A stretch of DNA of 64,000 bases from Auanema rhodensis (taxonomy: Eukaryota; Animalia; Nematoda). Every line of letters starts with the position of its first letter. Position 1 is the first letter of the stretch. Positions 1,019 through 56,672 of this stretch are shown in pieces. The position numbers were made by a program, and so were the translations under genes. Below the pieces are notes generated by a model. It did no database searches and was not told the DNA's origin. It saw only the letters and a program-made list of their open reading frames with translations. The stretch is from NCBI GenBank assembly GCA_964057225.1, contig OZ059899.1, positions 9,858,001 through 9,922,000 on the forward strand. Reading direction: 5' to 3'.

Positions 1019-1091
1019 GGCCGCGTGGCGCAATGGATAACGCGTCTGCCTACGGAGCAGAAGATTGTAGGTTCGAATCCTGCCGTGGTCG
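1019..1091 (+). tRNA. tRNA-Arg(ACG)
   Basis: 73 nt cloverleaf: acceptor GGCCGCG/CGTGGTC, anticodon arm TCTGC-CTACGGA-GCAGA, T arm GTAGG-TTCGAAT-CCTGC; A and B boxes present, no encoded CCA, T7 run just downstream. Confidence 0.96.
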
Positions 1092-1095
1092 TAAA

Positions 1096-1102
1096 TTTTT
1101 TT
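1096..1102 (+). terminator. RNA Pol III oligo-T terminator (example; present after the other copies except 10716)
   Basis: taaa-TTTTTTT-c immediately after the discriminator base. Confidence 0.85.
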
Positions 1103-1625
1103 CATTTCACTTGTCATTTATAAAAATCGAATTTATCTTCTTCAACGATTTGTTTTGCAATGTGTCATATGAATTTCATATTTGAACAAAACGTTTTTTA
1201 AGAAGTTTTTTTGTTGTCAACATATATATTTTCCTGGAATTCGAAAGCATTTGGGATGGAAATTAGAAAGAAAAGAACTAGTTTTTCCTACTTTAAAACA
1301 AACAATAAGAAATAAAATGAAAAAGATTGTTAGATATCCAATTTAAACTTATACATTTACTTCGATAAAGAGCCTATTAGTTTGAAATTTTATGTCTTAC
1401 AGTTCTCCAGCAGAACAGACTGATCCTGATTTCTCTATGATTTCATAAAACTCTCGTTTGATATACAAAAAGGAGAGGAATAACGTTTCCAGGACATCAA
1501 TGATATCGAATCTAGTGATATTGTAGAAAAATGTAATGTCAGCTCCATAGTTTTTCTCTTAATTTCTCTCATCACAATAGTCTTAGTTTTTTTTCATAAG
1601 AGTTTCTGAAATCTTAGTTGAACAA

Positions 1626-1698
1626 GGCCGCGTGGCGCAATGGATAACGCGTCTGCCTACGGAGCAGAAGATTGTAGGTTCGAATCCTGCCGTGGTCG
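1626..1698 (+). tRNA. tRNA-Arg(ACG)
   Basis: Same sequence as 1019-1091. Confidence 0.95.
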
Positions 1699-2034
1699 TA
1701 AATTTTTTTCATTTCACTTGTCATTTATAAAAATCGAATTTATCTTCTTCAACGATTTGTTTTGCAATGTGTCATAAGAATTTCATATTTGAACAAAACG
1801 TTTTTTAAGAAGTTTTTTTGTTGTCAACATATATATTTTCCTGGAATTCGAAAGCATTTGGGATGGAAATTAGAAAGAAAAGAACTAGTTTTTCCTACTT
1901 TAAAACAAACAATAAGAAATAAAATGAAAAAGATTGTTAGATATCCAATTTAAACTTATACATTTACTTCGATAAAGAGCCTATTAGTTTGAAATTTTAT
2001 GTCTTACAGTTCTCCAACAAAACAGACTGATCCT

Positions 2035-2280
2035 GATTTCTCTATGATTACATAAAACTCTCGTTTGATATAAAAGCATATTGGATAGAAATTTCGAAAG
2101 CATTTTGGATGAAAATTAGAAAGAAAAGAACTAGTTTTTCCTACTTTAAAACAAACAATAAGAAATAAAATGAAAAAGATTGTTAGATATCCAATTTAAA
2201 CTTATACATTTACTTCGATAAAGAGCCTATTAGTTTGAAATTTTATGTCTTACAGTTCTCCAACAGAACAGACTGATCCT
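2035..2280 (+). repeat. Example type C monomer (~245 bp); about 19 copies
   Basis: Core end ttgatat is followed directly by aaaagcatattggatagaaatttcgaaagc, skipping the pre-tRNA segment. Confidence 0.92.
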
Positions 2281-3709
2281 GATTTCTCTATGATTACATA
2301 AAACTCTCGTTTGATATACAAAAAGGAGAGGAATAACGTTTCCAGGATATCAATGATATCGAATCTAGTGATATTGTAGAAAAATGTAATGTCAGCTCCA
2401 TAGTTTTTCTCTTAATTTCTCTCATCACAATAGTCTTAGTTTTTTTTCATAAGAGTTTCTGAAATCTTAGTTGAACAAGGCAGTATATATTTTTTTCTGG
2501 AATTCGAAAGCATTTGGGATGGAAATTAGAAAGAAAAGAACTAGTTTTTCCTACTTTAAAACAAACAATAAGAAATAAAATGAAAAAGATTGTTAGATAT
2601 CCTATTTAAACTTATACATTTACTTCGATAAAGAGCCTATTAGTTTGAAATTTTATGTCTTACAGTTCACCAACAGAACAGACTGATCCTGATTTCTCTA
2701 TGATTACATAAAACTCTCGTTTGATATACAAAATAGAGAGGAATAACGTTTCCAGGATATCAATGATATCGAATCTAGTGATATTGTGGAAAAATGTAAT
2801 GTCAGCTCCATAGTTTTTCTTTTAATTTCTCTCATCACAATAGTCTTAGTTTTTTTTTCATAAGAGTTTCTGAAATCTTAGTTGAACAAGGCAGTATATA
2901 TTTTTTTCTAGAATTCGAAAGCATTTGGGATGGAAATTAGAAAGAAAAGAACTAATTTTTCTTACTTTAAAACAAACAATAAGAAATAAAATGAAAAAGA
3001 TTGTTAGATATCCAATTTAAACTTATACATTTACTTCGATAAAGAGCCTATTAGTTTGAAATTTTATGTCTTACAGTTCTCCAACAGAACAGACTGATCC
3101 TGATTTCTCTATGATTACATAAAACTCTCGTTTGATATACAAAAAGGAGAGGAATAACGTTTCCAGGATATCAATGATATCGAATCTAGTGATATTGTAG
3201 AAAAATGTAATGTCAGCTCCATAGTTTTTCTCTTAATTTCTCTCATCACAATAGTCTTAGTTTTTTTTCATGAGAGTTTCTGAAATCTTAGTTGAACAAG
3301 GCAGTATATATTTTTTTCTGGAATTCGAAAGCATTTAGGATGGAAATTAGAAAGAAAAGAACTAGTTTTTCCTACTTTAAAACAAACAATAAGAAATAAA
3401 ATGAAAAAGATTGTTAGATATCCAATTTAAACTTATACATTTACTTCGATAAAGAGCCTATTAGTTTGAAATTTTATGTCTTACAGTTCTCCAGCAGAAC
3501 AGACTGATCCTGATTTCTCTATGATTTCATAAAACTCTCGTTTGATATACAAAAAGGAGAGGAATAACGTTTCCAGGACATCAATGATATCGAATCTAGT
3601 GATATTGTAGAAAAATGTAATGTCAGCTCCATAGTTTTTCTCTTAATTTCTCTCATCACAATAGTCTTAGTTTTTTTTCATAAGAGTTTCTGAAATCTTA
3701 GTTGAACAA

Positions 3710-3782
3710 GGCCGCGTGGCGCAATGGATAACGCGTCTGCCTACGGAGCAGAAGATTGTAGGTTCGAATCCTGCCGTGGTCG
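3710..3782 (+). tRNA. tRNA-Arg(ACG)
   Basis: Same sequence as 1019-1091. Confidence 0.95.
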
Positions 3783-4316
3783 TAAATTTTTTTCATTTCA
3801 CTTGTCATTTATAAAAATCGAATTTATCTTCTTCAACGATTTGTTTTGCAATGTGTCATATGAATTTCATATTTGAACAAAACGTTTTTTAAGAAGTTTT
3901 TTTGTTGTCAACATATATATTTTCCTGGAATTCGAAAGCATTTGGGATGGAAATTAGAAAGAAAAGAACTAGTTTTTCCTACTTTAAAACAAACAATAAG
4001 AAATAAAATGAAAAAGATTGTTAGATATCCAATTTAAACTTATACATTTACTTCGATAAAGAGCCTATTAGTTTGAAATTTTATGTCTTACAGTTCTCCA
4101 GCAGAACAGACTGATCCTGATTTCTCTATGATTTCATAAAACTCTCGTTTGATATACAAAAAGGAGAGGAATAACGTTTCCAGGACATCAATGATATCGA
4201 ATCTAGTGATATTGTAGAAAAATGTAATGTCAGCTCCATAGTTTTTCTCTTAATTTCTCTCATCACAATAGTCTTAGTTTTTTTTCATAAGAGTTTCTGA
4301 AATCTTAGTTGAACAA

Positions 4317-4389
4317 GGCCGCGTGGCGCAATGGATAACGCGTCTGCCTACGGAGCAGAAGATTGTAGGTTCGAATCCTGCCGTGGTCG
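4317..4389 (+). tRNA. tRNA-Arg(ACG)
   Basis: Same sequence as 1019-1091. Confidence 0.95.
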
Positions 4390-5990
4390 TAAATTTTTTT
4401 CATTTCACTTGTCATTTATAAAAATCGAATTTATCTTCTTCAACGATTTGTTTTGCAATGTGTCATAAGAATTTCATATTTGAACAAAACGTTTTTTAAG
4501 AAGTTTTTTTGTTGTCAACATATATATTTTCCTGGAATTCGAAAGCATTTGGGATGGAAATTAGAAAGAAAAGAACTAGTTTTTCCTACTTTAAAACAAA
4601 CAATAAGAAATAAAATGAAAAAGATTGTTAGATATCCAATTTAAACTTATACATTTACTTCGATAAAGAGCCTATTAGTTTGAAATTTTATGTCTTACAG
4701 TTCTCCAACAAAACAGACTGATCCTGATTTCTCTATGATTACATAAAACTCTCGTTTGATATAAAAGCATATTGGATAGAAATTTCGAAAGCATTTTGGA
4801 TGAAAATTAGAAAGAAAAGAACTAGTTTTTCCTACTTTAAAACAAACAATAAGAAATAAAATGAAAAAGATTGTTAGATATCCAATTTAAACTTATACAT
4901 TTACTTCGATAAAGAGCCTATTAGTTTGAAATTTTATGTCTTACAGTTCTCCAACAGAACAGACTGATCCTGATTTCTCTATGATTACATAAAACTCTCG
5001 TTTGATATACAAAAAGGAGAGGAATAACGTTTCCAGGATATCAATGATATCGAATCTAGTGATATTGTAGAAAAATGTAATGTCAGCTCCATAGTTTTTC
5101 TCTTAATTTCTCTCATCACAATAGTCTTAGTTTTTTTTCATAAGAGTTTCTGAAATCTTAGTTGAACAAGGCAGTATATATTTTTTTCTGGTATTCGAAA
5201 GCATTTGGGATGGAAATTAGAAAAAAAAGAACTAGTTTTTCCTACTTTAAAACAAACAATAAGAAATAAAATGAAAAAGATTGTTAGATATCCAATTTAA
5301 ACTTATACATTTACTTCGATAAAGAGCCTATTAGTTTGAAATTTTATGTCTTACAGTTCTCCAACAGAACAGACTGATCCTGATTTCTCTATGATTACAT
5401 AAAACTCTCGTTTGATATACAAAATAGAGAGGAATAACGTTTCCAGGATATCAATGATATCGAATCTAGTGATATTGTGGAAAAATGTAATGTCAGCTCC
5501 ATAGTTTTTCTCTTAATTTCTCTCATCACAATAGTCTTAGTTTTTTTTTCATAAGAGTTTCTGAAATCTTAGTTGAACAAGGCAGTATATATTTTTTTCT
5601 GGAATTCGAAAGCATTTGGGATGGAAATTAGAAAGAAAAGAACTAGTTTTTCCTACTTTAAAACAAACAATAAGAAATAAAATGAAAAAGATTGTTAGAT
5701 ATCCAATTTAAACTTATACATTTACTTCGATAAAGAGCCTATTAGTTTGAAATTTTATGTCTTACAGTTCTCCAACAGAACAGACTGATCCTGATTTCTC
5801 TATGATTACATAAAACTCTCGTTTGATATACGAAATAGAGAGGAATAACGTTTCCAGGATATCAATGATATCGAATCTAGTGATATTGTGGAAAAATGTA
5901 ATGTCAGCTCCATAGTTTTTCTCTTAATTTCTCTCATCACAATAGTCTTAGTTTTTTTTCATAAGAGTTTCTGAAATCTTAGTTGAACAA

Positions 5991-6063
5991 GGCCGCGTGG
6001 AGCAATGGATAACGCGTCTGCCTACGGAGCAGAAGATTGTAGGTTCGAATCCTGCCGTGGTCG
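5991..6063 (+). tRNA. tRNA-Arg(ACG), C11A variant (possibly impaired)
   Basis: A at 6001 breaks the C11-G24 D-stem pair and alters the A box. Confidence 0.85.
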
Positions 6064-6597
6064 TAAATTTTTTTCTTTTCACTTGTCATTTATAAAAATC
6101 GAATTTATCTTCTTCAACGATTTGTTTTGCAATGTGTCATAAGAATTTCATAGTTGAACAAAACGTTTTTTAAGAAGTTTTTTTGTTGTCAACATATATA
6201 TTTTCCTGGAATTCGAAAGCATTTGGGATGGAAATTAGAAAGAAAAGAATTAGTTTTTCCTACTTTAAAACAAACAATAAGAAATAAAATGAAAAAGATT
6301 GTTAGATATCCAATTTAAACTTATACATTTACTTCGATAAAGAGCCTATTAGTTTGAAATTTTATGTCTTACAGTTCTCCAACAGAACAGACTGATCCTG
6401 ATTTCTCTATGATTACATAAAACTCTCGTTTGATATACAAAAAGGAGAGGAATAACGTTTCCAGGATATCAATGATATCGAATCTAGTGATATTGTAGAA
6501 AAATGTAATGTCAGCTCCATAGTTTTTCTCTTAATTTCTCTCATCACAATAGTCTTAGTTTTTTTTCATAAGAGTTTCTGAAATCTTAGTTGAACAA

Positions 6598-6670
6598 GGC
6601 CGCGTGGCGCAATGGATAACGCGTCTGCCTACGGAGCAGAAGATTGTAGGTTCGAATCCTGCCGTGGTCG
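6598..6670 (+). tRNA. tRNA-Arg(ACG)
   Basis: Same sequence as 1019-1091. Confidence 0.95.
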
Positions 6671-7450
6671 TAAATTTTTTTCATTTCACTTGTCATTTAT
6701 AAAAATCGAATTTATCTTCTTCAACGATTATTTTTGCAATGTGTCATAAGAATTTCATAGTTGAACAGAACGTTTTTTAAGAAGTTTTTTTGTTGTCAAC
6801 ATATATATTTTCCTGGAATTCGAAAGCATTTGGGATGGAAATTAGAAAGGAAAGAACTAGTTTTTCCTACTTTAAAACAAACAATAAAAAATAAAATGAA
6901 AAAGATTGTTAGATATCCAATTTAAACTTATACATTTACTTCGATAAACAGCCTATTAGTTTGAAATTTTATGTCTTACAGTTCTCCAACAGAACAGACT
7001 GATCCTGATTTCTCTATGATTACATAAAACTCTCGTTTGATATAAAAGCATATTGGATCGAAATTTCGAAAGCATTTTGGATGAAAATTAGAAAGAAAAG
7101 AATTAGTTTTTCCTACTTTAAAACAAACAATAAGAAATAATATGAAAAAGATTGTTAGATATCCAATTTAAACTTATACATTTACTTCGATAAAGAGCCT
7201 ATTAGTTTGAAATTTCATGTCTTACAGTTCTCCAACAGAACAGACTAATCCTGATTTCTCTATGATTACATAAAACTCTCGTTTGATATACAAAAAGGAG
7301 AGGAATAACGTTTCCAGGATATCAATGATATCGAATCTAGTGATATTGTAGAAAAATGTAATGTCAGCTCCATAGTTTTTCTCTTAATTTCTCTCATCAC
7401 AATAGTCTTAGTTTTTTTTCATAAGAGTTTCTGAAATCTTAGTTGAACAA

Positions 7451-7523
7451 GGCCGCGTGGCGCAATGGATAACGCGTCTGCCTACGGAGCAGAAGATTGT
7501 AGGTTCGAATCCTGCCGTGGTCG
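7451..7523 (+). tRNA. tRNA-Arg(ACG)
   Basis: Same sequence as 1019-1091. Confidence 0.95.
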
Positions 7524-10108
7524 TAAATTTTTTTCATTTCACTTGTCATTTATAAAAATCGAATTTATCTTCTTCAACGATTATTTTTGCAATGTGTCAT
7601 AAGAATTTCATAGTTGAACAAAACGTTTTTTAAGAAGTTTTTTTGTTGTCAACATATATATTTTCCTGGAATTCGAAAGCATTTGGGATGGAAATTAGAA
7701 AGAAAAGAACTAGTTTTTTCTACTTTAAAACAAACAATAAGAAATAAAATGAAAAAGATTGTTAGATATCCAATTTAAACTTATACATTTACTTGGATAA
7801 AGAGCCTATTAGTTTGAAATTTTATGTCTTACAGTTCTCCAACAGAACAGACTGATCCTGATTTCTCTATGATTACATAAAACTCTCGTTTGATATACAA
7901 AATAGAGAGGAATAACGTTTCCAGGATATCAATGATATCGAATCTAGTGATATTGTAGAAAAATGTAATGTCAGCTCCATAGTTTTTCTCTTAATTTCTC
8001 TCATCACAATAGTCTTAGTTTTTTTTCATAAGAGTTTCTGAAATCTTAGTTGAACAAGGCATTATATATTTTTTTCTGGAATTCGAAAGCATTTGGGATG
8101 GAAATTAGAAAGAAAAGAACTAGTTTTTCCTACTTTAAAACAAACAATAAGAAATAAATTGAAAAAGATTGTTAGATATCCAATTTAAACTTATACATTT
8201 ACTTCGATAAAGAGCCTATTAGTTTGAAATTTTATGTCTTACAGTTCTCCAACAGAACAGACTGATCCTGATTTCTCTATGATTACATAAAACTCTCGTT
8301 TGATATACAAAAAGGAGAGGAATAACGTTTCCAGGATATCAATGATATCGAATCTATTGATATTGTAGAAAAATGTAATGTCAGCTCCATAGTTTTTCTC
8401 TTAATTTCTCTCATCACAATAGTCTCAGTTTTTTTTCATAAGAGTTTCTGAAATCTTAGTTGAACAAGGCAGTATATATTTTTTTCTGGAATTCGAAAGC
8501 ATTTGGGATGGAAATTAGAAAGAAAAGAACTAGTTTTTCCTACTTTAAAACAAACAATAAGAAATAAAATGAAAAAGATTGTTAGATATCCAATTTAAAC
8601 TTATACATTTACTTCGATAAAGAGCCTATTAGTTTGAAATTTTATGTCTTACAGTTCTCCAACAGAACAGACTGATCCTGATTTCTCTATGATTACATAA
8701 AACTCTCGTTTGATATACAAAAAGGAGAGGAATAACGTTTCCAGGATATCAATGATATCGAATCTAGTGATATTGTAGAAAAATGTAATGTCAGCTCCAT
8801 AGTTTTTCTCTTAATTTCTCTCATCACAATAGTCTTAGTTTTTTTTCATAAGAGTTTCTGAAATCTTAGTTGAACAAGGCAGTATATATTTTTTTCTGGA
8901 ATTCGAAAGCATTTGGGATGGAAATTAGAAAGAAAAGAACTAGTTTTTCCTACTTTAAAACAAACAATAAGAAATAAAATGAAAAAGATTGTTAGATATC
9001 CTATTTAAACTTATACATTTACTTCGATAAAGAGCCTATTAGTTTGAAATTTTATGTCTTACAGTTCACCAACAGAACAGACTGATCCTGATTTCTCTAT
9101 GATTACATAAAACTCTCGTTTGATATACAAAATAGAGAGGAATAACGTTTCCAGGATATCAATGATATCGAATCTAGTGATATTGTGGAAAAATGTAATG
9201 TCAGCTCCATAGTTTTTCTTTTAATTTCTCTCATCACAATAGTCTTAGTTTTTTTTTCATAAGAGTTTCTGAAATCTTAGTTGAACAAGGCAGTATATAT
9301 TTTTTTCTAGAATTCGAAAGCATTTGGGATGGAAATTAGAAAGAAAAGAACTAATTTTTCTTACTTTAAAACAAACAATAAGAAATAAAATGAAAAAGAT
9401 TGTTAGATATCCAATTTAAACTTATACATTTACTTCGATAAAGAGCCTATTAGTTTGAAATTTTATGTCTTACAGTTCTCCAACAGAACAGACTGATCCT
9501 GATTTCTCTATGATTACATAAAACTCTCGTTTGATATACAAAAAGGAGAGGAATAACGTTTCCAGGATATCAATGATATCGAATCTAGTGATATTGTAGA
9601 AAAATGTAATGTCAGCTCCATAGTTTTTCTCTTAATTTCTCTCATCACAATAGTCTTAGTTTTTTTTCATGAGAGTTTCTGAAATCTTAGTTGAACAAGG
9701 CAGTATATATTTTTTTCTGGAATTCGAAAGCATTTAGGATGGAAATTAGAAAGAAAAGAACTAGTTTTTCCTACTTTAAAACAAACAATAAGAAATAAAA
9801 TGAAAAAGATTGTTAGATATCCAATTTAAACTTATACATTTACTTCGATAAAGAGCCTATTAGTTTGAAATTTTATGTCTTACAGTTCTCCAGCAGAACA
9901 GACTGATCCTGATTTCTCTATGATTTCATAAAACTCTCGTTTGATATACAAAAAGGAGAGGAATAACGTTTCCAGGACATCAATGATATCGAATCTAGTG
10001 ATATTGTAGAAAAATGTAATGTCAGCTCCATAGTTTTTCTCTTAATTTCTCTCATCACAATAGTCTTAGTTTTTTTTCATAAGAGTTTCTGAAATCTTAG
10101 TTGAACAA

Positions 10109-10181
10109 GGCCGCGTGGCGCAATGGATAACGCGTCTGCCTACGGAGCAGAAGATTGTAGGTTCGAATCCTGCCGTGGTCG
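10109..10181 (+). tRNA. tRNA-Arg(ACG)
   Basis: Same sequence as 1019-1091. Confidence 0.95.
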
Positions 10182-10715
10182 TAAATTTTTTTCATTTCAC
10201 TTGTCATTTATAAAAATCGAATTTATCTTCTTCAACGATTTGTTTTGCAATGTGTCATATGAATTTCATATTTGAACAAAACGTTTTTTAAGAAGTTTTT
10301 TTGTTGTCAACATATATATTTTCCTGGAATTCGAAAGCATTTGGGATGGAAATTAGAAAGAAAAGAACTAGTTTTTCCTACTTTAAAACAAACAATAAGA
10401 AATAAAATGAAAAAGATTGTTAGATATCCAATTTAAACTTATACATTTACTTCGATAAAGAGCCTATTAGTTTGAAATTTTATGTCTTACAGTTCTCCAG
10501 CAGAACAGACTGATCCTGATTTCTCTATGATTTCATAAAACTCTCGTTTGATATACAAAAAGGAGAGGAATAACGTTTCCAGGACATCAATGATATCGAA
10601 TCTAGTGATATTGTAGAAAAATGTAATGTCAGCTCCATAGTTTTTCTCTTAATTTCTCTCATCACAATAGTCTTAGTTTTTTTTCATAAGAGTTTCTGAA
10701 ATCTTAGTTGAACAA

Positions 10716-10788
10716 GGCCGCGTGGCGCAATGGATAACGCGTCTGCCTACGGAGCAGAAGATTGTAGGTTCGAATCCTGCCGTGGTCG
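10716..10788 (+). tRNA. tRNA-Arg(ACG), interrupted terminator
   Basis: Gene body identical; downstream run is TTTCTTT. Confidence 0.93.
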
Positions 10789-11568
10789 TAAATTTCTTTC
10801 ATTTCACTTGTCATTTATAAAAATCGAATTTATCTTCTTCAACGATTTGTTTTGCAATGTGTCATAAGAATTTCATATTTGAACAAAACGTTTTTTAAGA
10901 AGTTTTTTTGTTGTCAACATATATATTTTCCTGGAATTCGAAAGCATTTGGGATGGAAATTAGAAAGAAAAGAACTAGTTTTTCCTACTTTAAAACAAAC
11001 AATAAGAAATAAAATGAAAAAGATTGTTAGATATCCAATTTAAACTTATACATTTACTTCGATAAAGAGCCTATTAGTTTGAAATTTTATGTCTTACAGT
11101 TCTCCAACAAAACAGACTGATCCTGATTTCTCTATGATTACATAAAACTCTCGTTTGATATAAAAGCATATTGGATAGAAATTTCGAAAGCATTTTGGAT
11201 GAAAATTAGAAAGAAAAGAACTAGTTTTTCCTACTTTAAAACAAACAATAAGAAATAAAATGAAAAAGATTGTTAGATATCCAATTTAAACTTATACATT
11301 TACTTCGATAAAGAGCCTATTAGTTTGAAATTTTATGTCTTACAGTTCTCCAACAGAACAGACTGATCCTGATTTCTCTATGATTACATAAAACTCTCGT
11401 TTGATATACAAAAAGGAGAGGAATAACGTTTCCAGGATATCAATGATATCGAATCTAGTGATATTGTAGAAAAATGTAATGTCAGCTCCATAGTTTTTCT
11501 CTTAATTTCTCTCATCACAATAGTCTTAGTTTTTTTTCATAAGAGTTTCTGAAATCTTAGTTGAACAA

Positions 11569-11641
11569 GGCCGCGTGGCGCAATGGATAACGCGTCTGCC
11601 TACGGAGCAGAAGATTGTAGGTTCGAATCCTGCCGTGGTCG
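11569..11641 (+). tRNA. tRNA-Arg(ACG)
   Basis: Same sequence as 1019-1091. Confidence 0.95.
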
Positions 11642-12996: not shown

Positions 12997-13069
12997 GGCC
13001 GCGTGGCGCAATGGATAACGCGTCTGCCTACGGAGCAGAAGATTGTAGGTTCGAATCCTGCCGTGGTCG
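12997..13069 (+). tRNA. tRNA-Arg(ACG)
   Basis: Same sequence as 1019-1091. Confidence 0.95.
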
Positions 13070-13849: not shown

Positions 13850-13922
13850 GGCCGCGTGGCGCAATGGATAACGCGTCTGCCTACGGAGCAGAAGATTGTA
13901 GGTTCGAATCCTGCCGTGGTCG
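13850..13922 (+). tRNA. tRNA-Arg(ACG)
   Basis: Same sequence as 1019-1091. Confidence 0.95.
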
Positions 13923-43706: not shown

Positions 43707-43779
43707 GGCCGCGTGGCGCAATGGATAACGCGTCTGCCTACGGAGCAGAAGATTGTAGGTTCGAATCCTGCCGTGGTCG
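43707..43779 (+). tRNA. tRNA-Arg(ACG)
   Basis: Same sequence; 86 bp from copy 2. Confidence 0.95.
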
Positions 43780-44723: not shown

Positions 44724-44796
44724 GGCCGCGTGGCGCAATGGATAACGCGTCTGCCTACGGAGCAGAAGATTGTAGGTTCGAATCCTGCCGTGGTCG
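44724..44796 (+). tRNA. tRNA-Arg(ACG)
   Basis: Same sequence as 1019-1091. Confidence 0.95.
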
Positions 44797-46068: not shown

Positions 46069-47271
46069 CGTTCCATGGTGGTTCCCCAGGGTTCCGGCTG
46101 GGTAACCACATGGAATTACTTTCTTTTCTTCCAAATATAAATGATAAAGAGTATAGAGAGAAAGGTTTATTCATGATAAAGTATACAAATCACAATAATA
46201 AAAGTTACATAATGATTCCTAGTCGCAGCCCAAAGGACTCGTAAGGAAACCTTATATAGTATTCCTTACGAGCATAAAAAGTGGTTATATCAGGTACGCG
46301 GAACTTGGTTCCGCTTGAATTGGGCTTTCTTTAATTAAACTTAATATGAAAAAGTGTTCGTTCATTGTTGCATTGAATTCCTGTTTCTCAAATGTATTTT
46401 GATTAAAAAAAACAGAAAAAGAAAAGATTGACAGAAAAAAAAAATATCGAAATACCTTTCTTTAAATGAATAAATATAAAAGAATTTCGAATTATTTTAT
46501 GATAGTTATAAACAAAGTTTTTCCTCAAAAATGAATGAAAGATCTTAGAATATGGATAAAAATCGAAATGTTTCTTTTAAATGAGTGAATATAAAATTTC
46601 AAAATTAAGTTGTTTCAAAATATATCTTTTTAAATAAATGTATATAAGATTTCAGTATTAATTTATGAATCAAAATCAAAATAAAGTTCTTTGAATGAAT
46701 GAAATAAAGAAGAGAAAGATTTCAAATTAAATTCATATAGCATAATCGAAATATAATTCTTTAATTAGATGTATGAAAGACAACAAAATCAAATTTATGT
46801 AGCGAAATATGGTTCTTAGAGATTCGTCGGTTATAGACGAATCTCGGTGGAACCTCCACGTTCCATGGTGGTTCCCCAGGGTTCCGGCTGGGTAACCACA
46901 TGGAATTACTTTCTTTTCTTCCAAATATAAATGATAAAGAGTATAGAGAGAAAGGTTTATTCATGATAAAGTATACAAATCACAATAATAAAAGTTACAT
47001 AATGATTCCTAGTCGCAGCCCAAAGGACTCGTAAGGAAACCTTATATAGTATTCCTTACGAGCATAAAAAGTGGTTATATCAGGTACGCGGAACTTGGTT
47101 CCGCTTGAATTGGGCTTTCTTTAATTAAACTTAATATGAAAAAGTGTTCGTTCATTGTTGCATTGAATTCCTGTTTCTCAAATGTAGCGTCAGCTATTTG
47201 TTTTTATAATGTTCCGTTTTATAAGCGATTGACGTTGTCAATCGCTCTACTTATAGGACACGTATGGAACA
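46069..47271 (-). mobile_element. Non-autonomous LTR retrotransposon, copy 3 (1203 bp)
   Basis: Same structure; private A>G at 46489; 3' LTR 46069-46396, PBS 46840-46858, 5' LTR 46859-47271. Confidence 0.9.
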
Positions 47272-47357
47272 CAGCTCCATAGTTTTTCTCTTAATTTCTC
47301 TCATCACAATAGTCTTAGTTTTTTTTCATAAGAGTTTCTGAAATCTTAGTTGAACAA

Positions 47358-47430
47358 GGCCGCGTGGCGCAATGGATAACGCGTCTGCCTACGGAGCAGA
47401 AGATTGTAGGTTCGAATCCTGCCGTGGTCG
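47358..47430 (+). tRNA. tRNA-Arg(ACG)
   Basis: Same sequence; 86 bp from copy 3. Confidence 0.95.
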
Positions 47431-50342
47431 TAAATTTTTTTCATTTCACTTGTCATTTATAAAAATCGAATTTATCTTCTTCATCGATTATTTTTGCAAT
47501 GTGTCATAAGAATTTCATAGTTGAACAAAACGTTTTTTAAGAAGTTTTTTTGTTGTCAACATATATATTTTCCTGGAATTCGAAAGCATTTGGGATGGAA
47601 ATTAGAAAGAAAAGAACTAGTTTTTTCTACTTTAAAACAAACAATAAGAAATAAAATGAAAAAGATTGTTAGATATCCAATTTAAACTTATACATTTACT
47701 TCGATAAAGAGCCTATTAGTTTGAAATTTTATGTCTTACAGTTCTCCAACAGAACAGACTGATCCTGATTTCTCTATGATTACATAAAACTCTCGTTTGA
47801 TATACAAAATAGAGAGGAATAACGTTTCCAGGATATCAATGATATCGAATCTAGTGATATTGTAGAAAAATGTAATGTCAGCTCCAAAGTTTTTCTCTTA
47901 ATTTCTCTCATCACAATAGTCTTAGTTTTTTTTCATAAGAGTTTCTGAAATCTTAGTTGAACAAGGCAGTATATATTTTTTTCTGGAATTCGAAAGCATT
48001 TGGGATGGAAATTAGAAAGAAAAGAACTAGTTTTTCCTACTTTAAAACAAACAATAAGAAATAAAATGAAAAAGATTGTTAGATATCCAATTTAAACTTA
48101 TACATTTACTTCGATAAAGAGCCTATTAGTTTGAAATTTTATGTCTTACAGTTCTCCAACAGAACAGACTGATCCTGATTTCTCTATGATTACATAAAAC
48201 TCTCGTTTGATATACAAAAAGGAGAGGAATAACGTTTCCAGGATATCAATGATATCGAATCTAGTGATATTGTAGAAAAATGTAATGTCAGCTCCATAGT
48301 TTTTCTCTTAATTTCTCTCATCACAATAGTCTTAGTTTTTTTTCATGAGAGTTTCTGAAATCTTAGTTGAACAAGGCAGTATATATTTTTTTCTGGAATT
48401 CGAAAGCATTTAGGATGGAAATTAGAAAGAAAAGAACTAGTTTTTCCTACTTTAAAACAAACAATAAGAAATAAAATGAAAAAGATTGTTAGATATCCAA
48501 TTTAAACTTATACATTTACTTCGATAAAGAGCCTATTAGTTTGAAATTTTATGTCTTACAGTTCTCCAACAGAACAGACTGATCCTGATTTCTCTATGAT
48601 TACATAAAACTCTCGTTTGATATACAAAAAGGAGAGAAATAACGTTTCCAGGATATCAATGATATCGAATCTAGTGATATTGTAGAAAAATGTAATGTCA
48701 GCTCCATAGTTTTTCTCTTAATTTCTCTCATCACAATAGTCTTAGTTTTTTTTCATGAGAGTTTCTGAAATCTTAGTTGAACAAGGCAGTATATATTTTT
48801 TTCTGGAATTCGAAAGCATTTAGGATGGAAATTAGAAAGAAAAGAACTAGTTTTTCCTACTTTAAAACAAACAATAAGAAATAAAATGAAAAAGATTGTT
48901 AGATATCCAATTTAAACTTATACATTTACTTCGATAAAGAGCCTATTAGTTTGAAATTTTATGTCTTACAGTTCTCCAACAGAACAGACTGATCCTGATT
49001 TCTCTATGATTACATAAAACTCTCGTTTGATATACAAAAAGGAGAGGAATAACGTTTCCAGGATATCAATGATATCGAATCTAGTGATATTGTAGAAAAA
49101 TGTAATGTCAGCTCCATAGTTTTTCTCTTAATTTCTCTCATCACAATAGTCTTAGTTTTTTTTCATAAGAGTTTCTGAAATCTTAGTTGAACAAGGCAGT
49201 ATATATTTTTTTCTGGAATTCGAAAGCATTTGGGATGGAAATTAGAAAGAAAAGAACTAGTTTTTCCTACTTTAAAACAAACAATAAGAAATAAAATGAA
49301 AAAGATTGTTAGATATCCAATTTAAACTTATACATTTACTTCGATAAAGAGCCTATTAGTTTGAAATTTTATGTCTTACAGTTCTCCAACAGAACAGACT
49401 GATCCTGATTTCTCTATGATTACATAAAACTCTCGTTTGATATACAAAATAGAGAGGAATAACGTTTCCAGGATATCAATGATATCGAATCTAGTGATAT
49501 TGTAGAAAAATGTGATGTCAGCTCCAAAGTTTTTCTCTTAATTTCTCTCATCACAATAGTCTTAGTTTTTTTTCATAAGAGTTTCTGAAATCTTAGTTGA
49601 ACAAGGCAGTATATATTTTTTTCTGGAATTCGAAAGCATTTGGGATGGAAATTAGAAAGAAAAGAACTAGTTTTTCCTACTTTAAAACAAACAATAAGAA
49701 ATAAAATGAAAAAGATTGTTAGATATCCAATTTAAACTTATACATTTACTTCGATAAAGAGCCTATTAGTTTGAAATTTTATGTCTTACAGTTCTCCAAC
49801 AGAACAGACTGATCCTGATTTCTCTATGATTACATAAAACTCTCGTTTGATATACAAAAAGGAGAGAAATAACGTTTCCAGGATATCAATGATATCGAAT
49901 CTAGTGATATTGTAGAAAAATGTAATGTCAGCTCCATAGTTTTTCTCTTAATTTCTCTCATCACAATAGTCTTAGTTTTTTTTCATGAGAGTTTCTGAAA
50001 TCTTAGTTGAACAAGGCAGTATATATTTTTTTCTGGAATTCGAAAGCATTTAGGATGGAAATTAGAAAGAAAAGAACTAGTTTTTCCTACTTTAAAACAA
50101 ACAATAAGAAATAAAATGAAAAAGATTGTTAGATATCCAATTTAAACTTATACATTTACTTCGATAAAGAGCCTATTAGTTTGAAATTTTATGTCTTACA
50201 GTTCTCCAACAGAACAGACTGATCCTGATTTCTCTATGATTACATAAAACTCTCGTTTGATATACAAAAAGGAGAGGAATAACGTTTCCAGGATATCAAT
50301 GATATCGAATCTAGTGATATTGTAGAAAAATGTAATGTCAGC

Positions 50343-51544
50343 CGTTCCATGGTGGTTCCCCAGGGTTCCGGCTGGGTAACCACATGGAATTACTTTCTTT
50401 TCTTCCAAATATAAATGATAAAGAGTATAGAGAGAAAGGTTTATTCATGATAAAGTATACAAATCACAATAATAAAAGTTACATAATGATTCCTAGTCGC
50501 AGCCCAAAGGACTCGTAAGGAAACCTTATATAGTATTCCTTACGAGCATAAAAAGTGGTTATATCAGGTACGCGGAACTTGGTTCCGCTTGAATTGGGCT
50601 TTCTTTAATTAAACTTAATATGAAAAAGTGTTCGTTCATTGTTGCATTGAATTCCTGTTTCTCAAATGTATTTTGATTAAAAAAAACAGAAAAAGAAAAG
50701 ATTGACAGAAAAAAAAATATCGAAATACCTTTCTTTAAATGAATAAATATAAAAGAATTTCAAATTATTTTATGATAGTTATAAACAAAGTTTTTCCTCA
50801 AAAATGAATGAAAGATCTTAGAATATGGATAAAAATCGAAATGTTTCTTTTAAATGAGTGAATATAAAATTTCAAAATTAAGTTGTTTCAAAATATATCT
50901 TTTTAAATAAATGTATATAAGATTTCAGTATTAATTTATGAATCAAAATCAAAATAAAGTTCTTTGAATGAATGAAATAAAGAAGAGAAAGATTTCAAAT
51001 TAAATTCATATAGCATAATCGAAATATAATTCTTTAATTAGATGTATGAAAGACAACAAAATCAAATTTATGTAGCGAAATATGGTTCTTAGAGATTCGT
51101 CGGTTATAGACGAATCTCGGTGGAACCTCCACGTTCCATGGTGGTTCCCCAGGGTTCCGGCTGGGTAACCACATGGAATTACTTTCTTTTCTTCCAAATA
51201 TAAATGATAAAGAGTATAGAGAGAAAGGTTTATTCATGATAAAGTATACAAATCACAATAATAAAAGTTACATAATGATTCCTAGTCGCAGCCCAAAGGA
51301 CTCGTAAGGAAACCTTATATAGTATTCCTTACGAGCATAAAAAGTGGTTATATCAGGTACGCGGAACTTGGTTCCGCTTGAATTGGGCTTTCTTTAATTA
51401 AACTTAATATGAAAAAGTGTTCGTTCATTGTTGCATTGAATTCCTGTTTCTCAAATGTAGCGTCAGCTATTTGTTTTTATAATGTTCCGTTTTATAAGCG
51501 ATTGACGTTGTCAATCGCTCTACTTATAGGACACGTATGGAACA
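50343..51544 (-). mobile_element. Non-autonomous LTR retrotransposon, copy 4 (1202 bp)
   Basis: Same structure, one A fewer in a homopolymer; 3' LTR 50343-50670, PBS 51113-51131, 5' LTR 51132-51544. Confidence 0.9.
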
Positions 51545-51630
51545 CAGCTCCATAGTTTTTCTCTTAATTTCTCTCATCACAATAGTCTTAGTTTTTTTTC
51601 ATAAGAGTTTCTGAAATCTTAGTTGAACAA

Positions 51631-51703
51631 GGCCGCGTGGCGCAATGGATAACGCGTCTGCCTACGGAGCAGAAGATTGTAGGTTCGAATCCTGCCGTGG
51701 TCG
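51631..51703 (+). tRNA. tRNA-Arg(ACG)
   Basis: Same sequence; 86 bp from copy 4. Confidence 0.95.
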
Positions 51704-52647
51704 TAAATTTTTTTCATTTCACTTGTCATTTATAAAAATCGAATTTATCTTCTTCATCGATTATTTTTGCAATGTGTCATAAGAATTTCATAGTTGAACA
51801 AAACGTTTTTTAAGAAGTTTTTTTGTTGTCAACATATATATTTTCCTGGAATTCGAAAGCATTTGGGATGGAAATTAGAAAGAAAAGAACTAGTTTTTTC
51901 TACTTTAAAACAAACAATAAGAAATAAAATGAAAAAGATTGTTAGATATCCAATTTAAACTTATACATTTACTTCGATAAAGAGCCTATTAGTTTGAAAT
52001 TTTATGTCTTACAGTTCTCCAACAGAACAGACTGATCCTGATTTCTCTATGATTACATAAAACTCTCGTTTGATATACAAAATAGAGAGGAATAACGTTT
52101 CCAGGATATCAATGATATCGAATCTAGTGATATTGTAGAAAAATGTAATGTCAGCTCCAAAGTTTTTCTCTTAATTTCTCTCATCACAATAGTCTTAGTT
52201 TTTTTTCATAAGAGTTTCTGAAATCTTAGTTGAACAAGGCAGTATATATTTTTTTCTGGAATTCGAAAGCATTTGGGATGGAAATTAGAAAGAAAAGAAC
52301 TAGTTTTTCCTACTTTAAAACAAACAATAAGAAATAAAATGAAAAAGATTGTTAGATATCCAATTTAAACTTATACATTTACTTCGATAAAGAGCCTATT
52401 AGTTTGAAATTTTATGTCTTACAGTTCTCCAACAGAACAGACTGATCCTGATTTCTCTATGATTACATAAAACTCTCGTTTGATATACAAAATAGAGAGG
52501 AATAACGTTTCCAGGATATCAATGATATCGAATCTAGTGATATTGTAGAAAAATGTAATGTCAGCTCCATAGTTTTTCTCTTAATTTCTCTCATCACAAT
52601 AGTCTTAGTTTTTTTTCATAAGAGTTTCTGAAATCTTAGTTGAACAA

Positions 52648-52720
52648 GGCCGCGTGGCGCAATGGATAACGCGTCTGCCTACGGAGCAGAAGATTGTAGG
52701 TTCGAATCCTGCCGTGGTCG
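52648..52720 (+). tRNA. tRNA-Arg(ACG)
   Basis: Same sequence as 1019-1091. Confidence 0.95.
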
Positions 52721-53909
52721 TAAATTTTTTTCATTTCACTTGTCATTTATAAAAATCGAATTTATCTTCTTCAACGATTTGTTTTGCAATGTGTCATAAG
52801 AATTTCATAGTTGAACAAAACGTTTTTTAAGAAGTTTTTTTGTTGTCAACATATATATTTTCCTGGAATTCGAAAGCATTTGGGATGGAAATTAGAAAGA
52901 AAAGAACTAGTTTTTCCTACTTTGAAACAAACAATAAGAAATAAAATGAAAAAGATTGTTAGATATCCAATTTAAACTTATACATTTACTTCGATAAAGA
53001 GCCTATTAGTTTGAAATTTTATGTCTTACAGTTCTCCAACAGAACAGACTGATCCTGATTTCTCTATGATTACATAAAACTCTCGTTTGATATACAAAAT
53101 AGAGAGGAATAACGTTTCCAGGATATCAATGATATCGAATCTAGTGATATTGTAGAAAAATGTAATGTCAGCTCCATAGTTTTTCTCTTAATTTCTCTCA
53201 TCACAATAGTCTTAGTTTTTTTTCATAAGAGTTTCTGAAATCTTAGTTGAACAAGGCAGTATATATTTTTTTCTGGAATTCGAAAGCATTTGGGATGAAA
53301 ATTAGAAAGAAAAGAACTAGTTTTTCCTACTTTAAAACAAACAATAAGAAATAAAATGAAAAAGATTGTTAGATATCCAATTTAAACTTATACATTTACT
53401 TCGATAAAGAGCCTATTAGTTTGAAATTTTATGTCTTACAGTTCTCCAACAGAACAGACTGATCCTGATTGCTCTATGATTACATAAAACTCTCGTTCGA
53501 TATAAAAGCATATTGGATAGAAATTTCGAAAGCATTTTGGATGGAAATTAGAACGAAAAGAACTAGTTTTTTCTATTTTAAAACAAACAATAATAAACAA
53601 AATGAAAAGATTGTTAGATATCCAATTTTAACTTATACATTTACTTCGATGAAGAGCCTATTAGATTGAATTTTTATGTCTTACAGTTCTCCAACAGAAC
53701 AGACTTATCCTGATTTTTCTACGATTACATAAAACTCTCGTTTGATATACAAAAAGGAGAGGAATAACGTATCCAGGATATCAATGATATCGAATCTAGT
53801 GATATTGTAGAAAAATGTAATGTCAGCTCCATAGTTTTTCTCTTAATTTCTTTCATCACAATAGTCTTAGTTTTTTTTCATAAGAGTTTCTGAAATCTTA
53901 GTTGAATAA

Positions 53910-53982
53910 GGCCGCGTGGCGCAATGGATAACGCGTCTGCCTACGGAGCAGAAGATTGTAGGTTCGAATCCTGCCGTGGTCG
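53910..53982 (+). tRNA. tRNA-Arg(ACG)
   Basis: Same sequence as 1019-1091. Confidence 0.95.
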
Positions 53983-54762
53983 TAAATTTTTTTCATTTCA
54001 CTTGTCATTTATAAAAATCGAATTTATCTTCTTCAACGATTATTTTTGCAATGTGTCATAAGAATTTCATAGTTGAACAAAACGTTTTTTGAGAAGTTTT
54101 TTTGTTGTCAACATATATATTTTCCTGGAATTCGAAAGCATTTGGGATGGAAATTAGAAAGAAAAGAACTAGTTTTTTCTACTTTAAAACAAACAATAAG
54201 AAATAAAATGAGAAAGATTGTTAGATATCCAATTTAAACTTATACATTTACTTCGATAAAGAGCCTATTAGTTTGAAATTTTATGTCTTACAGTTCTCCA
54301 ACAGAACAGACTGATCCTGATTTCTCTATGATTACATAAAACTCTCGTTTGATATAAAAGCATATTGGATAGAAATTTCGAAAGCATTTTGGATGAAAAT
54401 TAGAAAGAAAAGAACTAGTTTTTCCTACTTTAAAACAAACAATAAGAAATAAAATGAAAAAGATTGTTAGATATCCATTTTAAACTTATACATTTACTTC
54501 GATAAAGAGCCTATTAGTTTGAAATTTTATGTCTTACAGTTCTCCAACAGAACAGACTAATCCTGATTTCTCTATGATTACATAAAACTCTCGTTTGATA
54601 TACAAAAAGGAGAGGAATAACGTTTCCAGGATATCAATGATATCGAATCTAGTGATATTGTAGAAAAATGTAATGTCAGCTCCATAGTTTTTCTCTTAAT
54701 TTCTCTCATCACAATAGTCTTAGTTTTTTTTCATAAGAGTTTCTGAAATCTTAGTTGAACAA

Positions 54763-54835
54763 GGCCGCGTGGCGCAATGGATAACGCGTCTGCCTACGGA
54801 GCAGAAGATTGTAGGTTCGAATCCTGCCGTGGTCG
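54763..54835 (+). tRNA. tRNA-Arg(ACG)
   Basis: Same sequence as 1019-1091. Confidence 0.95.
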
Positions 54836-56599
54836 TAAATTTTTTTCATTTCACTTGTCATTTATAAAAATCGAATTTATCTTCTTCAACGATTATTTTT
54901 GCAATGTGTCATAAGAATTTCATAGTTGAACAAAACGTTTTTTAAGAAGTTTTTTTGTTGTCAACATATATATTTTCCTGGAGTTCGAAAGCATTTGGGA
55001 TGGAAATTAGAAAGAAAAGAACTAGTTTTTTCTACTTTGAAACAAACAATAAGAAATAAAATGAAAAAGATTGTTAGATATCCAATTTAAACTTATACAT
55101 TTACTTCGATAAATAGCCTATTAGTTTGAAATTTTATGTCTTACAGTTCTCCAACAGAACAGACTGATCCTGATTTCTCTATGATTACATAAAACTCTCG
55201 TTTGATATACAAAATAGAGAGGAATAACGTTTCCAGGATATCAATGATATCGAATCTAGTGATATTGTAGAAAAATGTAATGTCAGCTCCATAGTTTTTC
55301 TCTTAATTTCTCTCATCACAATAGTCTTAGTTTTTTTTCATAAGAGTTTCTGAAATCTTAGTTGAACAAGGCAGTATATATTTTTTTCTGGAATTCGAAA
55401 GCATTTGGGATGGAAATTAGAAAGAAAAGAACTAGTTTTTCCTACTTTAAAACAAACAATAGGAAATAAAATGAAAAAGATTGTTAGATATCCAATTTAA
55501 ACTTATACATTTACTTCGATAAAGAGCCTATTAGTTTGAAATTTTATGTCTTACAGTTCTCCAACAGAACAGACTGATCCTGATTTCTCTATGATTACAT
55601 AAAACTCTCGTTTGATATACAAAAAGGAGAGGAATAACGTTTCCAGGATATCAATGATATCGAATCTAGTGATATTGTAGAAAAATGTAATGTCAGCTCA
55701 ATAGTTTTTCTCTTAATTTCTCTCATCACAATAGTCTTAGTTTTTTTTCATGAGAGTTTCTGAAATCTTAGTTGAACAAGGCAGTATATATTTTTTTCTG
55801 GAATTCGAAAGCATTTAGGATGAAAATTAGAAAGAAAAGAACTAGTTTTTCCTACTTTAAAACAAACAATAAGAAATAAAATGAAAAAGATTGTTAGATA
55901 TCCAATTTAAACTTATACATTTACTTCGATAAAGAGCCTATTAGTTTGAAATTTTATGTCTTACAGTTCTCCAACAGAACAGACTAATCCTGATTTCTCT
56001 ATGATTACATAAAACTCTCGTTTGATATACAAAAAGGAGAGGAATAACGTTTCCAGGATATCAATGATATCGAATCTAGTGATATTGTAGAAAAATGTAA
56101 TGTCAGCTCCATAGTTTTTCTCTTAATTTCTCTCATCACAATAGTCTTAGTTTTTTTTCATAAGAGTTTCTGAAATCTTAGTTGAACAAGGCAGTATATA
56201 TTTTTTTCTGGAATTCGAAAGCATTTAGGATGGAAATTAGAAAGAAAAGAACTAGTTTTTCCTACTTTAAAACAAACAATAAGAAATAAAATGAAAAAGA
56301 TTGTTAGATATCCAATTTAAACTTATACATTTACTTCGATAAAGAGCCTATTAGTTTGAAATTTTATGTCTTACAGTTCTCCAACAGAACAGACTGATCC
56401 TGATTTCTCTATGATTACATAAAACTCTCGTTTGATATACAAAAAGGAGAGGAATAACGTTTCCAGGATATCAATGATATCGAATCTAGTGATATTGTAG
56501 AAAAATGTAATGTCAGCTCCATAGTTTTTCTCTTAATTTCTCTCATCACAATAGTCTTAGTTTTTTTTCATAAGAGTTTCTGAAATCTTAGTTGAACAA

Positions 56600-56672
56600 G
56601 GCCGCGTGGCGCAATGGATAACGCGTCTGCCTACGGAGCAGAAGATTGTAGGTTCGAATCCTGCCGTGGTCG
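56600..56672 (+). tRNA. tRNA-Arg(ACG), last copy in the window
   Basis: Same sequence as 1019-1091. Confidence 0.95.

Follow-up and report, generated by a model that had tools for sequence, protein, structure and literature searches.

A tandem tRNA-Arg(ACG) gene array interleaved with gene-less monomers in the nematode Auanema rhodensis

Tandem tRNA-gene arrays in other organisms and at this locus

The closest described counterpart is found in another nematode, Nippostrongylus brasiliensis, which carries tRNA-Trp in a ~200-bp unit repeated about 150 times, and 90 copies of tRNA-Ser with an 80-bp spacer (PMC5765664). The likeness to the present locus, a stretch of 64,000 nucleotides from Auanema rhodensis (hereafter the window), lies in an animal host, long head-to-tail arrays, and a short unit consisting of one conserved tRNA gene and a species-specific spacer. 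However, a gene is reported in every Nippostrongylus unit, whereas only 38 of 133 complete monomers (about 29%) bear one here, the rest being 410- or 246-bp gene-less derivatives interleaved as parts of higher-order blocks. The present array also differs in its isoacceptor, Arg-ACG, and in the greater length of its unit (607 bp). Clustered tDNAs of Arabidopsis thaliana, namely a Ser-Tyr-Tyr array, Pro clusters and a tRNA-Cys cluster of 0.4-kb units, vary in copy number between accessions, with mobile-element traces in the Cys cluster (PMC7544208, PMC10701932, PMC12308677). These too are tandem units with canonical Pol III elements, but the clusters are shorter or made up of several genes, and no gene-less monomers are described among their units. 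They are also CG-methylated and mostly silent, whereas the present array, from an AT-rich eukaryote, bears no sign of CpG methylation: CpG is not depleted (o/e 0.90) and changes at CpG sites are not in excess.

More distant parallels exist. In the AT-rich Entamoeba genome, long tandem arrays with a unit of 0.5-1.8 kb hold nearly all of the tRNA genes, with up to five genes per unit and microsatellite-like STRs between them (PMC2652664); the array here has one gene, no STR spacer (TRF), and mostly gene-less units. The human 1q23.3 tRNA VNTR is likewise a copy-number-variable tandem repeat with tRNA genes, and is proposed as a boundary element (PMC4041453); its unit is 7.3 kb, GC-rich and CTCF-binding, with several tRNA genes and 9-43 units per allele, in contrast to units of 0.25-0.6 kb and 29% GC here. 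Complex satellites offer a further likeness, in head-to-tail monomers that are about 99% alike, higher-order copies that are 99.65-100% identical, greater monomer divergence toward one side, and an insertion, probably of a mobile element, amplified along with the higher-order unit; yet an ordinary satellite monomer is normally gene-less, and here one length variant holds an intact Pol III gene.

Monomer classes and higher-order blocks

The satellite spans the entire window head-to-tail and continues past both ends. Phasing by the TTCGAAAGC anchor placed 134 anchors on the + strand and none on the - strand, such that no inverted monomers occur in the window, and the 133 complete monomers comprise 76 of 408-411 bp (type A), 34 of 606/607 bp (type B), 19 of 244-246 bp (type C) and four of 1813/1814 bp (type D). 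Mean identity between monomers is 98.99% (a difference of ~1%). An earlier, sequence-only reading of this DNA had recognised the 607-, 410- and ~245-bp classes, but missed the longest, which is a 607-bp monomer with a 1207-bp insertion; its placement of every gene in a 607-bp monomer thus holds for 34 of the 38 genes (606/607 bp), the other four lying in 1813/1814-bp monomers. The main features are as follows.

1..64000, +, tandem array, base period about 410 bp, cut at both ends (TRF)
223..632, +, type A monomer, representative, 410 bp, without tRNA
633..1239, +, type B monomer, representative, 607 bp, type A plus a 197-bp tRNA module
1092..1215, +, 3' flank within the 197-bp module, with a T7 terminator 4 nt past the tRNA and then an AT-rich trailer
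1847..2092, +, type C monomer, representative, 246 bp
22879..24692, +, type D monomer, 1814 bp, type B plus the 1207-bp insertion
42114-43927, type D monomer
45765-47578, type D monomer
50039-51851, type D monomer
23183..24389, no strand assigned, 1207-bp non-coding insertion, copy 1, with an internal 327-bp direct repeat
42418..43624, no strand assigned, insertion copy 2, identical to copy 1
46069..47275, no strand assigned, insertion copy 3, one substitution
50343..51548, no strand assigned, insertion copy 4, 1206 bp, 1-bp indel
35586..42113, +, four consecutive copies (99.76% identical) of the 1427-bp higher-order unit A-A-B, followed by A-A ahead of a type D monomer
56821..64000, +, tRNA-free distal domain made up solely of A and C monomers, with a C-C-C-A-C block that recurs at 3848 bp

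Alignment blocks reduce these classes to one clean 197-bp presence/absence module, comprising the tRNA and its 3' flank, which distinguishes the 607-bp from the 410-bp unit, and one 1207-bp insertion. The type C monomer consists of the first ~226-230 bp of type A followed by ~16-20 bp that partially duplicate the start of the monomer. The monomers had been described as irregularly interspersed, but they are arranged in higher-order blocks, one example being 410-410-607 (1427 bp). Copies of these blocks are 99.65-100% identical (0-0.35% difference), and a 3.65-kb block has a copy 19 kb away that is 99.95% identical. The 1207-bp insertion is probably a non-autonomous mobile element, and as its four copies share one insertion site, with no more than one substitution or one indel between them, it was evidently copied along with the array. 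Toward the distal domain the pattern changes, in that the left half of its monomers carries a divergent haplotype; one 606-bp type B monomer, which houses gene 36, is a recombinant with this divergent left half.

The tRNA genes and their module

ARAGORN returned exactly 38 tRNA-Arg(ACG) genes in the window, all on the + strand, matching the count and common orientation reported from sequence alone.

1019..1091, +, gene 1
1626..1698, +, gene 2
3710..3782, +, gene 3
4317..4389, +, gene 4
5991..6063, +, gene 5, sole variant (C11A), with the 11-24 pair and the A-box match lost
6598..6670, +, gene 6
7451..7523, +, gene 7
10109..10181, +, gene 8
10716..10788, +, gene 9
11569..11641, +, gene 10
12997..13069, +, gene 11
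13850..13922, +, gene 12
14867..14939, +, gene 13
15720..15792, +, gene 14
17147..17219, +, gene 15
18574..18646, +, gene 16
20411..20483, +, gene 17
21838..21910, +, gene 18
24472..24544, +, gene 19, in type D monomer
25489..25561, +, gene 20
27737..27809, +, gene 21
30395..30467, +, gene 22
31248..31320, +, gene 23
32675..32747, +, gene 24
34102..34174, +, gene 25
35365..35437, +, gene 26
36792..36864, +, gene 27
38219..38291, +, gene 28
39646..39718, +, gene 29
41073..41145, +, gene 30
43707..43779, +, gene 31, in type D monomer
44724..44796, +, gene 32
47358..47430, +, gene 33, in type D monomer
51631..51703, +, gene 34, in type D monomer
52648..52720, +, gene 35
53910..53982, +, gene 36, in the recombinant monomer
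54763..54835, +, gene 37
56600..56672, +, gene 38

The Rfam tRNA score of 58.3 bits exceeds the gathering score of 29. As had been claimed, 37 of the 38 copies are base-identical, and the genes have a gaacaa leader and a taaattttttt trailer; TAAATTTTTTT follows 36 of the 38, and each gene has a T-run terminator. The minimum free energy fold is a cloverleaf for the common sequence and not for the C11A copy, the A box is matched in 37 of 38 genes, and the B box in all 38. By these sequence criteria every gene appears to be a competent type-2 Pol III unit, and the same features lead us to expect that the genes bind TFIIIC and that at least some are transcribed.

The description of the tRNA as an optional module is borne out, as it forms a discrete presence/absence unit, and SNP haplotypes are common to A and B monomers, with the module on backgrounds also seen in tRNA-less monomers. 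No B-box (TFIIIC-type) motif occurs in the window outside the 38 tRNAs, and together with the discreteness of the module this upholds the earlier proposal that the number of genes and TFIIIC sites can vary independently of array length. Because B boxes are confined to the module, TFIIIC-type site density ranges from two per 1.2 kb to none in 7 kb along one array, which could suggest that gene-bearing monomers are TFIIIC-bound boundary or organising elements within a satellite that is heterochromatic or associated with a centromere, at a density governed by exchange between monomer types. tDNAs act as barriers at S. pombe centromeres, and the proposed boundary role of the human VNTR (PMC4041453) points the same way. 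We nonetheless regard this structural role as improbable, given that the window bears no sign of heterochromatin, of a centromere, or of a boundary between two chromatin types, and that the genes lie throughout the homogenised core and not at its edge, the visible array edge (57-64 kb) being devoid of them.

The junction left where the module is absent, GGC|AGTATAT, in which GGC are tRNA bases 1-3, is common to all 74 captured tRNA-less junctions, which represent one and the same event. In the 20 bp past this junction the 607- and 410-bp types differ at four positions, so that a clean deletion from the 607-bp unit as it is today does not account for the event; the three tRNA bases could be retained by chance (1 in 64). 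SINEs and other mobile elements can give rise to satellites (PMC10702118, PMC6947457), and long identical repeats are difficult to assemble. Even so, it is very doubtful that the locus is a tandemly amplified tRNA-derived SINE or other mobile element, or an assembly artefact, instead of a genuine gene array. The tRNA has the full canonical cloverleaf, its terminator lies 4 nt downstream, and it does not resemble a diverged tRNA-like head joined to a body; the module has neither an A-rich tail nor a target-site duplication, and the four length classes, in consistent higher-order sequence and with many different SNP haplotypes, argue against a collapsed or invented assembly.

Uniformity of the genes and origin of the array

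The segregating SNPs previously attributed to the spacer are indeed concentrated there: among the 38 tRNA-bearing monomers 45 of 607 aligned columns vary, and just one of these falls in the tRNA. The comparison of tRNA with flank diversity that had been proposed gives a mixed answer. With all 38 monomers, variable sites are fewer in the tRNA (1/73) than in the flanks (43/534; one-sided p = 0.021), but removal of the one recombinant monomer lowers the flank count to 30/534 (p = 0.093), and an equal lack of variation is seen in 13.5% of all 73-bp windows. The conservation argument is thus weak, and the uniformity of the tRNA provides no clear evidence of selection; as monomers differ by only ~1%, and higher-order copies by 0-0.35%, recent amplification is enough to account for most of the identity. 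A degree of purifying selection or biased homogenisation may contribute, given the nominal result with all 38 monomers, a tRNA sequence identical across the six haplotypes of the 124-bp module 3' flank (the trailer), and the lack of decayed tRNA copies anywhere in the window, the older distal domain simply being without the module.

These data bear on whether the array is kept as a dosage reservoir, that is, for a large supply of tRNA-Arg(ACG), whose anticodon would be read as ICG and serve the codons CGU/CGC/CGA; this supply could be constitutive, or restricted to a tissue or stage in the manner of the Arabidopsis Ser-Tyr-Tyr cluster, which is reactivated in root-cap cells (PMC12308677). That precedent for a cell-type-specific role, the retention of cloverleaf, B box and terminator with only one damaging change, the nominal deficit of variable sites, and the identity of the tRNA across six trailer haplotypes would fit such selection. 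It appears unlikely, however, since the conservation signal is lost with a single monomer, 71% of monomers are gene-less and co-amplified in the same higher-order blocks, which is unexpected under dose selection alone, and a survey of eukaryotic genomes argues that selection on tRNAs does not explain swings in tDNA copy number (PMC2888827).

We consider it rather more probable than otherwise that this is a young array in which unequal exchange has multiplied both a unit with a tRNA gene and gene-less derivatives of it, a model whose observed basis is the unit types, shared junctions, higher-order blocks and near-identity. The starting point would have been a 607-bp unit in which a single ordinary nuclear tRNA-Arg(ACG) gene is framed by its 5' flank and 124 bp of 3' flank; unequal crossing-over would have multiplied this unit along with two shorter derivatives, one of 410 bp lacking the 197-bp module, and one of 246 bp whose right half is gone too, in an array that may still be turning over. 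The 410-bp form most likely had a single origin, by deletion from tRNA base 4 onward together with the 3' flank, and would then have spread, while recombination within monomers may have placed the module on mixed SNP backgrounds. Gene loss from a gene-bearing unit would be a likelier source of the optional module than gain of a gene by a satellite; we found no related array for comparison. The uniformity of the 38 copies would then stem mainly from the recency of copying, and their number would most likely be a by-product of array dynamics and not a selected dose. The A. rhodensis locus is, in these terms, a variant of the tandem tRNA-gene arrays already known in other organisms.

Architecture and higher-order organisation of the array

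The whole window lies inside the array and is made wholly of one AT-rich repeat (G+C 29% throughout), with periods of 410 bp and ~245 bp detected over its full extent by Tandem Repeats Finder. The conserved anchor used for phasing occurs 134 times on the + strand and never on the - strand; it delimits 133 complete monomers, which fall into four length types.

Monomer types among the 133 complete monomers
Type A: 408-411 bp, 76 copies, no tRNA gene
Type B: 606/607 bp, 34 copies, tRNA gene present
Type C: 244-246 bp, 19 copies, no tRNA gene
Type D: 1813/1814 bp, 4 copies, tRNA gene present

The similar monomers follow one another head to tail in a single orientation, as in satellite DNA, and as both window ends fall inside monomers, the array must exceed 64 kb. 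When all monomers were aligned with MAFFT, the alignment split into clean blocks: ~230 columns shared by A, B, C and D; a right half of ~180 bp that is missing in C; a 197-bp block limited to B and D, comprising the 73-bp tRNA and 124 bp of 3' flank; and a 1207-bp block limited to D. The C monomers stop after GATATA, and carry ~20 bp partly duplicating the start of the next monomer. The sequence-only reading had proposed that the tRNA gene is an optional module of the satellite, and the sharp edges of the 197-bp block, together with its presence or absence between monomer types, bear this out. The structural part of that interpretation, a module present or absent across monomers of one satellite, is therefore supported.

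The irregular interspersion of monomer types described in the same reading was not borne out, as the monomer string contains recurring multi-monomer motifs. These include long recurring runs of A-A-B (1427 bp), a B-B-C-A-A(-A) motif within the first 11 kb and a D-A-B motif; the last 7 kb combine runs of A with a C-C-C-A-C block that recurs at 3848 bp. Between copies of the 1427-bp unit the identity is 99.65-100%, against ~99.0% between monomers (mean identity among A monomers, 98.99%), the relationship that defines a higher-order repeat (HOR), and a 3.65-kb block has a second copy 19 kb away that is 99.95% identical. Such a pattern of identity is what unequal crossing-over leaves behind when it has acted recently and at several scales. 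The distal domain (56821-64000) is without tRNA genes, and its monomers carry a divergent haplotype only in their left ~200 bp, the right half agreeing with the main family. In a recombinant monomer at 53525, a divergent left half is joined to the tRNA module. More generally, SNP haplotypes are common to A and B monomers, which suggests that recombination within monomers has put the module on mixed backgrounds.

The tRNA-Arg(ACG) module: competence, junctions and variability

The tRNA-Arg(ACG) genes identified by ARAGORN number 38; every one lies on the + strand, and they are contained in 38 of the 133 complete monomers.

Reference copies of the tRNA gene
1019-1091, + strand, first tRNA-Arg(ACG) gene
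5991-6063, + strand, copy with the substitution C11A
56600-56672, + strand, last tRNA-Arg(ACG) gene

The number and limits previously read from the sequence (38 genes, 1019 to 56672) were exact, as was the observation that 37 of 38 copies are base-identical, the exception at 5991 being C11A. One gene per 607-bp monomer, as then stated, holds for 34 genes but fails for the other four of the 38, which reside in D monomers that had been overlooked. The gene matches the Rfam tRNA model RF00005 over its full length (58.3 bits, against a gathering threshold of 29), the minimum-energy fold of the common sequence is a cloverleaf, and the D arm, T loop and anticodon loop (U33, A34 C35 G36, G37) are canonical by inspection of 1019-1091 (+). 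The acceptor stem is not known from human tRNA-Arg; this, the low G+C and the wholly repetitive make-up of the window speak against a human origin. An A-box pattern is found in 37/38 copies, being missing from the C11A copy, while the B box GGTTCGANNCC is present in 38/38 and nowhere outside the 38 tRNAs on either strand of the whole window. A T7 terminator begins 4 bases 3' of the gene in 36/38 copies, with TAAATTTTTTT following 36/38; the exceptions are one copy in which T7 precedes a changed base, and one with an interrupted T run (TTTCTTT). The 60 bp upstream of the genes are almost invariant. On these sequence features, the genes are ordinary type-2 Pol III genes. In the C11A copy at 5991-6063 the 11-24 pair is broken, the A box no longer matches and the minimum-energy fold is not a cloverleaf; this copy is probably impaired. 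A tandem tRNA-derived SINE was considered and rejected, given the canonical tRNA, the terminator 4 nt downstream, and a module end of mixed AT with neither tail nor duplication.

All 74 captured junctions in tRNA-less A monomers (74/74) represent one and the same event. The A junction reads GAACAAGGC followed by AGTATAT, and retains the first three tRNA bases (GGC); the right-hand junction is single, and common to all B and D monomers. Because GGC is kept and the A junction is of single origin, derivation of A from B by one deletion is likely, whereas under the alternative of insertion the target would already have had the first three tRNA bases, a 1-in-64 coincidence. Within the 20 bp 3' of the junction there are four differences between A and B, from which it follows that the event was something other than a clean deletion from the B unit as it now stands.

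Variability was computed over the 38 gene-bearing (B and D) monomers of the window.

Variability of the tRNA and its flanks
tRNA: 1/73 columns variable, π 0.0007
Trailer (3' flank): 12/126 columns variable, π 0.018
Shared upstream part: 30/386 columns variable, π 0.010

The proposed check of tRNA against flank diversity gave a divided answer: the tRNA is nominally less variable than the pooled flanks (1/73 vs 43/534 variable sites; one-sided Fisher p=0.021), but the recombinant monomer at 53525 supplies much of the flank variation, and when it is left out the flanks fall to 30/534 and the difference to p=0.093. Selection on the tRNA was accordingly rejected as a conclusion from this test, whose nominal significance hangs on one monomer. 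Windows of 73 bp as invariant as the tRNA make up 6.1% with the recombinant, and 13.5% of windows around the unit without it; the zone of low variation reaches from ~130 bp upstream to ~50 bp downstream of the gene, and is not tRNA-specific. Monomers diverge by ~1%, so that 4 to 6 tRNA changes would be expected, and selection and recency are therefore inseparable within the window. One tRNA sequence nonetheless spans six trailer haplotypes, an identity which leans toward either constraint or homogenisation. If the array were a selected reservoir of gene dosage, both the uniformity and the apparent competence of the copies would be in keeping, but eukaryotes commonly have homogeneous tDNA clusters, whose swings in copy number have been argued not to stem from selection on tRNAs (PMC2888827); we regard this explanation as unlikely.

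CpG is not depleted across the window (observed/expected 0.90), and changes among monomers number 3 at 34 CpG sites, versus 42 at 153 other C/G sites, so that CpG positions show no excess of change. The footprint of heavy germline CG methylation is thus absent, although this is an indirect signature in the sequence and no sign of activity. The pattern fits an organism without methylation of repeats, like many invertebrates, and is without the mark of heavy germline CG methylation typical of the silent clustered tDNAs of Arabidopsis (PMC7544208). A role of the genes as structural TFIIIC sites could draw on the B box in every copy; this account seems very unlikely.

The 1207-bp insertion and other candidate features

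The D monomers are B monomers carrying a 1207-bp insertion.

Copies of the 1207-bp insertion, each inside a tRNA-bearing monomer
23183-24389
42418-43624
46069-47275
50343-51548

All four share one insertion site, GTCAGC^TCCATAG, which lies ~80 bp 5' of the tRNA. No more than one substitution or one indel separates the copies, so a single insertion has been copied along with the array. The insertion opens with 327 bp that recur with 100% identity 790 bp later, before a tail of ~90 bp; it has short GTTCCAT/ATGGAAC termini, several small hairpins and a possible 4-bp CAGC duplication, and contains no ORF >70 aa and no Rfam match. It is probably an unclassified non-autonomous mobile element copied along with the HOR. 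Classification as an LTR or TRIM element was rejected, because ~90 bp more element follows the second direct repeat and primer-binding-site or polypurine features are lacking. The satellite just before the insertion (23168-23182) matches 13/15 bases at 24294-24308, the boundary between the second direct repeat and the tail; the match may be accidental, or may record how the composite insertion formed. That the array as a whole should be a mobile element or an assembly artefact is hardly credible.

No protein gene, spliced gene model, toxin, virus or ORF >74 aa was found in the window, and its ORFs were rejected as protein-coding, being artefacts of repeat phase. Seven ORFs translated from the repeat were absent from the protein collection, and a word search with the most abundant of its ORFs found no match in protein collections. 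Each A or B monomer also has one weak, full-length match to the Rfam Y RNA model, scoring 23-26 bits where the gathering threshold is 38.

Weak Y RNA matches
24952-25045
57080-57173
63135-63228
Equal offset in other A and B monomers

These were attributed to chance, since the terminal stem is unpaired and the fold is no better than those of shuffles (z = +0.77). Neither a 20-mer common to 129 monomers nor 43 nt of the tRNA had an exact match among metagenome, prokaryotic genome or viral contigs, collections without a eukaryotic genome set, so these blanks weigh little on the matter of relatives. The first 18 bases of the tRNA were not found in a literature search, which also returned no report of Arg-ACG together with tandem arrays.

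Origin and significance of the array

Tandem tRNA-gene arrays are found increasingly often in long-read assemblies; they may be reservoirs of genes kept by selection, elements of chromatin, or by-products of the dynamics of repeats. Nippostrongylus brasiliensis has ~150 tandem copies of a ~200-bp tRNA-Trp unit, as well as 90 copies of tRNA-Ser spaced by 80 bp (PMC5765664), and in Arabidopsis there are Ser-Tyr-Tyr, Pro, and 0.4-kb-unit Cys clusters (PMC7544208, PMC10701932). In Entamoeba, almost all tRNA genes lie in arrays with STR spacers (PMC2652664), and a boundary-element role has been proposed for a human 7.3-kb tRNA VNTR (PMC4041453). Given the Nippostrongylus and Arabidopsis precedents, the present array is unsurprising to the specialist. 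It nevertheless departs from homogeneous arrays of the Nippostrongylus and Arabidopsis Cys type, whose defining feature is a gene in every unit, in that only 38/133 monomers have one; and from Entamoeba, whose genes are separated by microsatellite-like STRs, in being without STRs: besides the 245/410-bp periods, Tandem Repeats Finder reported nothing but a partial duplication of 24 bp x2.2. The most apt description is that of a tRNA-gene tandem array, part of which has become gene-less satellite; it may equally well be called a complex satellite, one of whose length variants is a gene.

The account we prefer, and consider fairly probable, is of a recent amplification by unequal exchange, in which a competent tRNA gene unit multiplied along with gene-less derivatives, such that tRNA gene copy number would be a by-product of array amplification. 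The fuller proposal, that active TFIIIC/Pol III sites stand within a (peri)centromeric or heterochromatic satellite, and that the ratio of 607- to 410-bp monomers, shifted by unequal exchange, tunes chromatin or a stage-specific supply of tRNA-Arg(ACG), appears distinctly unlikely on the features considered here; if true, the array would constitute a natural allelic series of a satellite with and without a Pol III gene. The result is a clean structural description of the array, rather than a demonstrated function. Gene-bearing and gene-less monomers are adjacent and ~99% identical outside the 197-bp module, and thereby offer a built-in control: long-molecule profiles of occupancy, nucleosomes, methylation or transcription could isolate what a single Pol III gene does to the chromatin of a satellite. 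More broadly, a tRNA-gene array part-converted to gene-less satellite represents one plausible route by which satellites originate.
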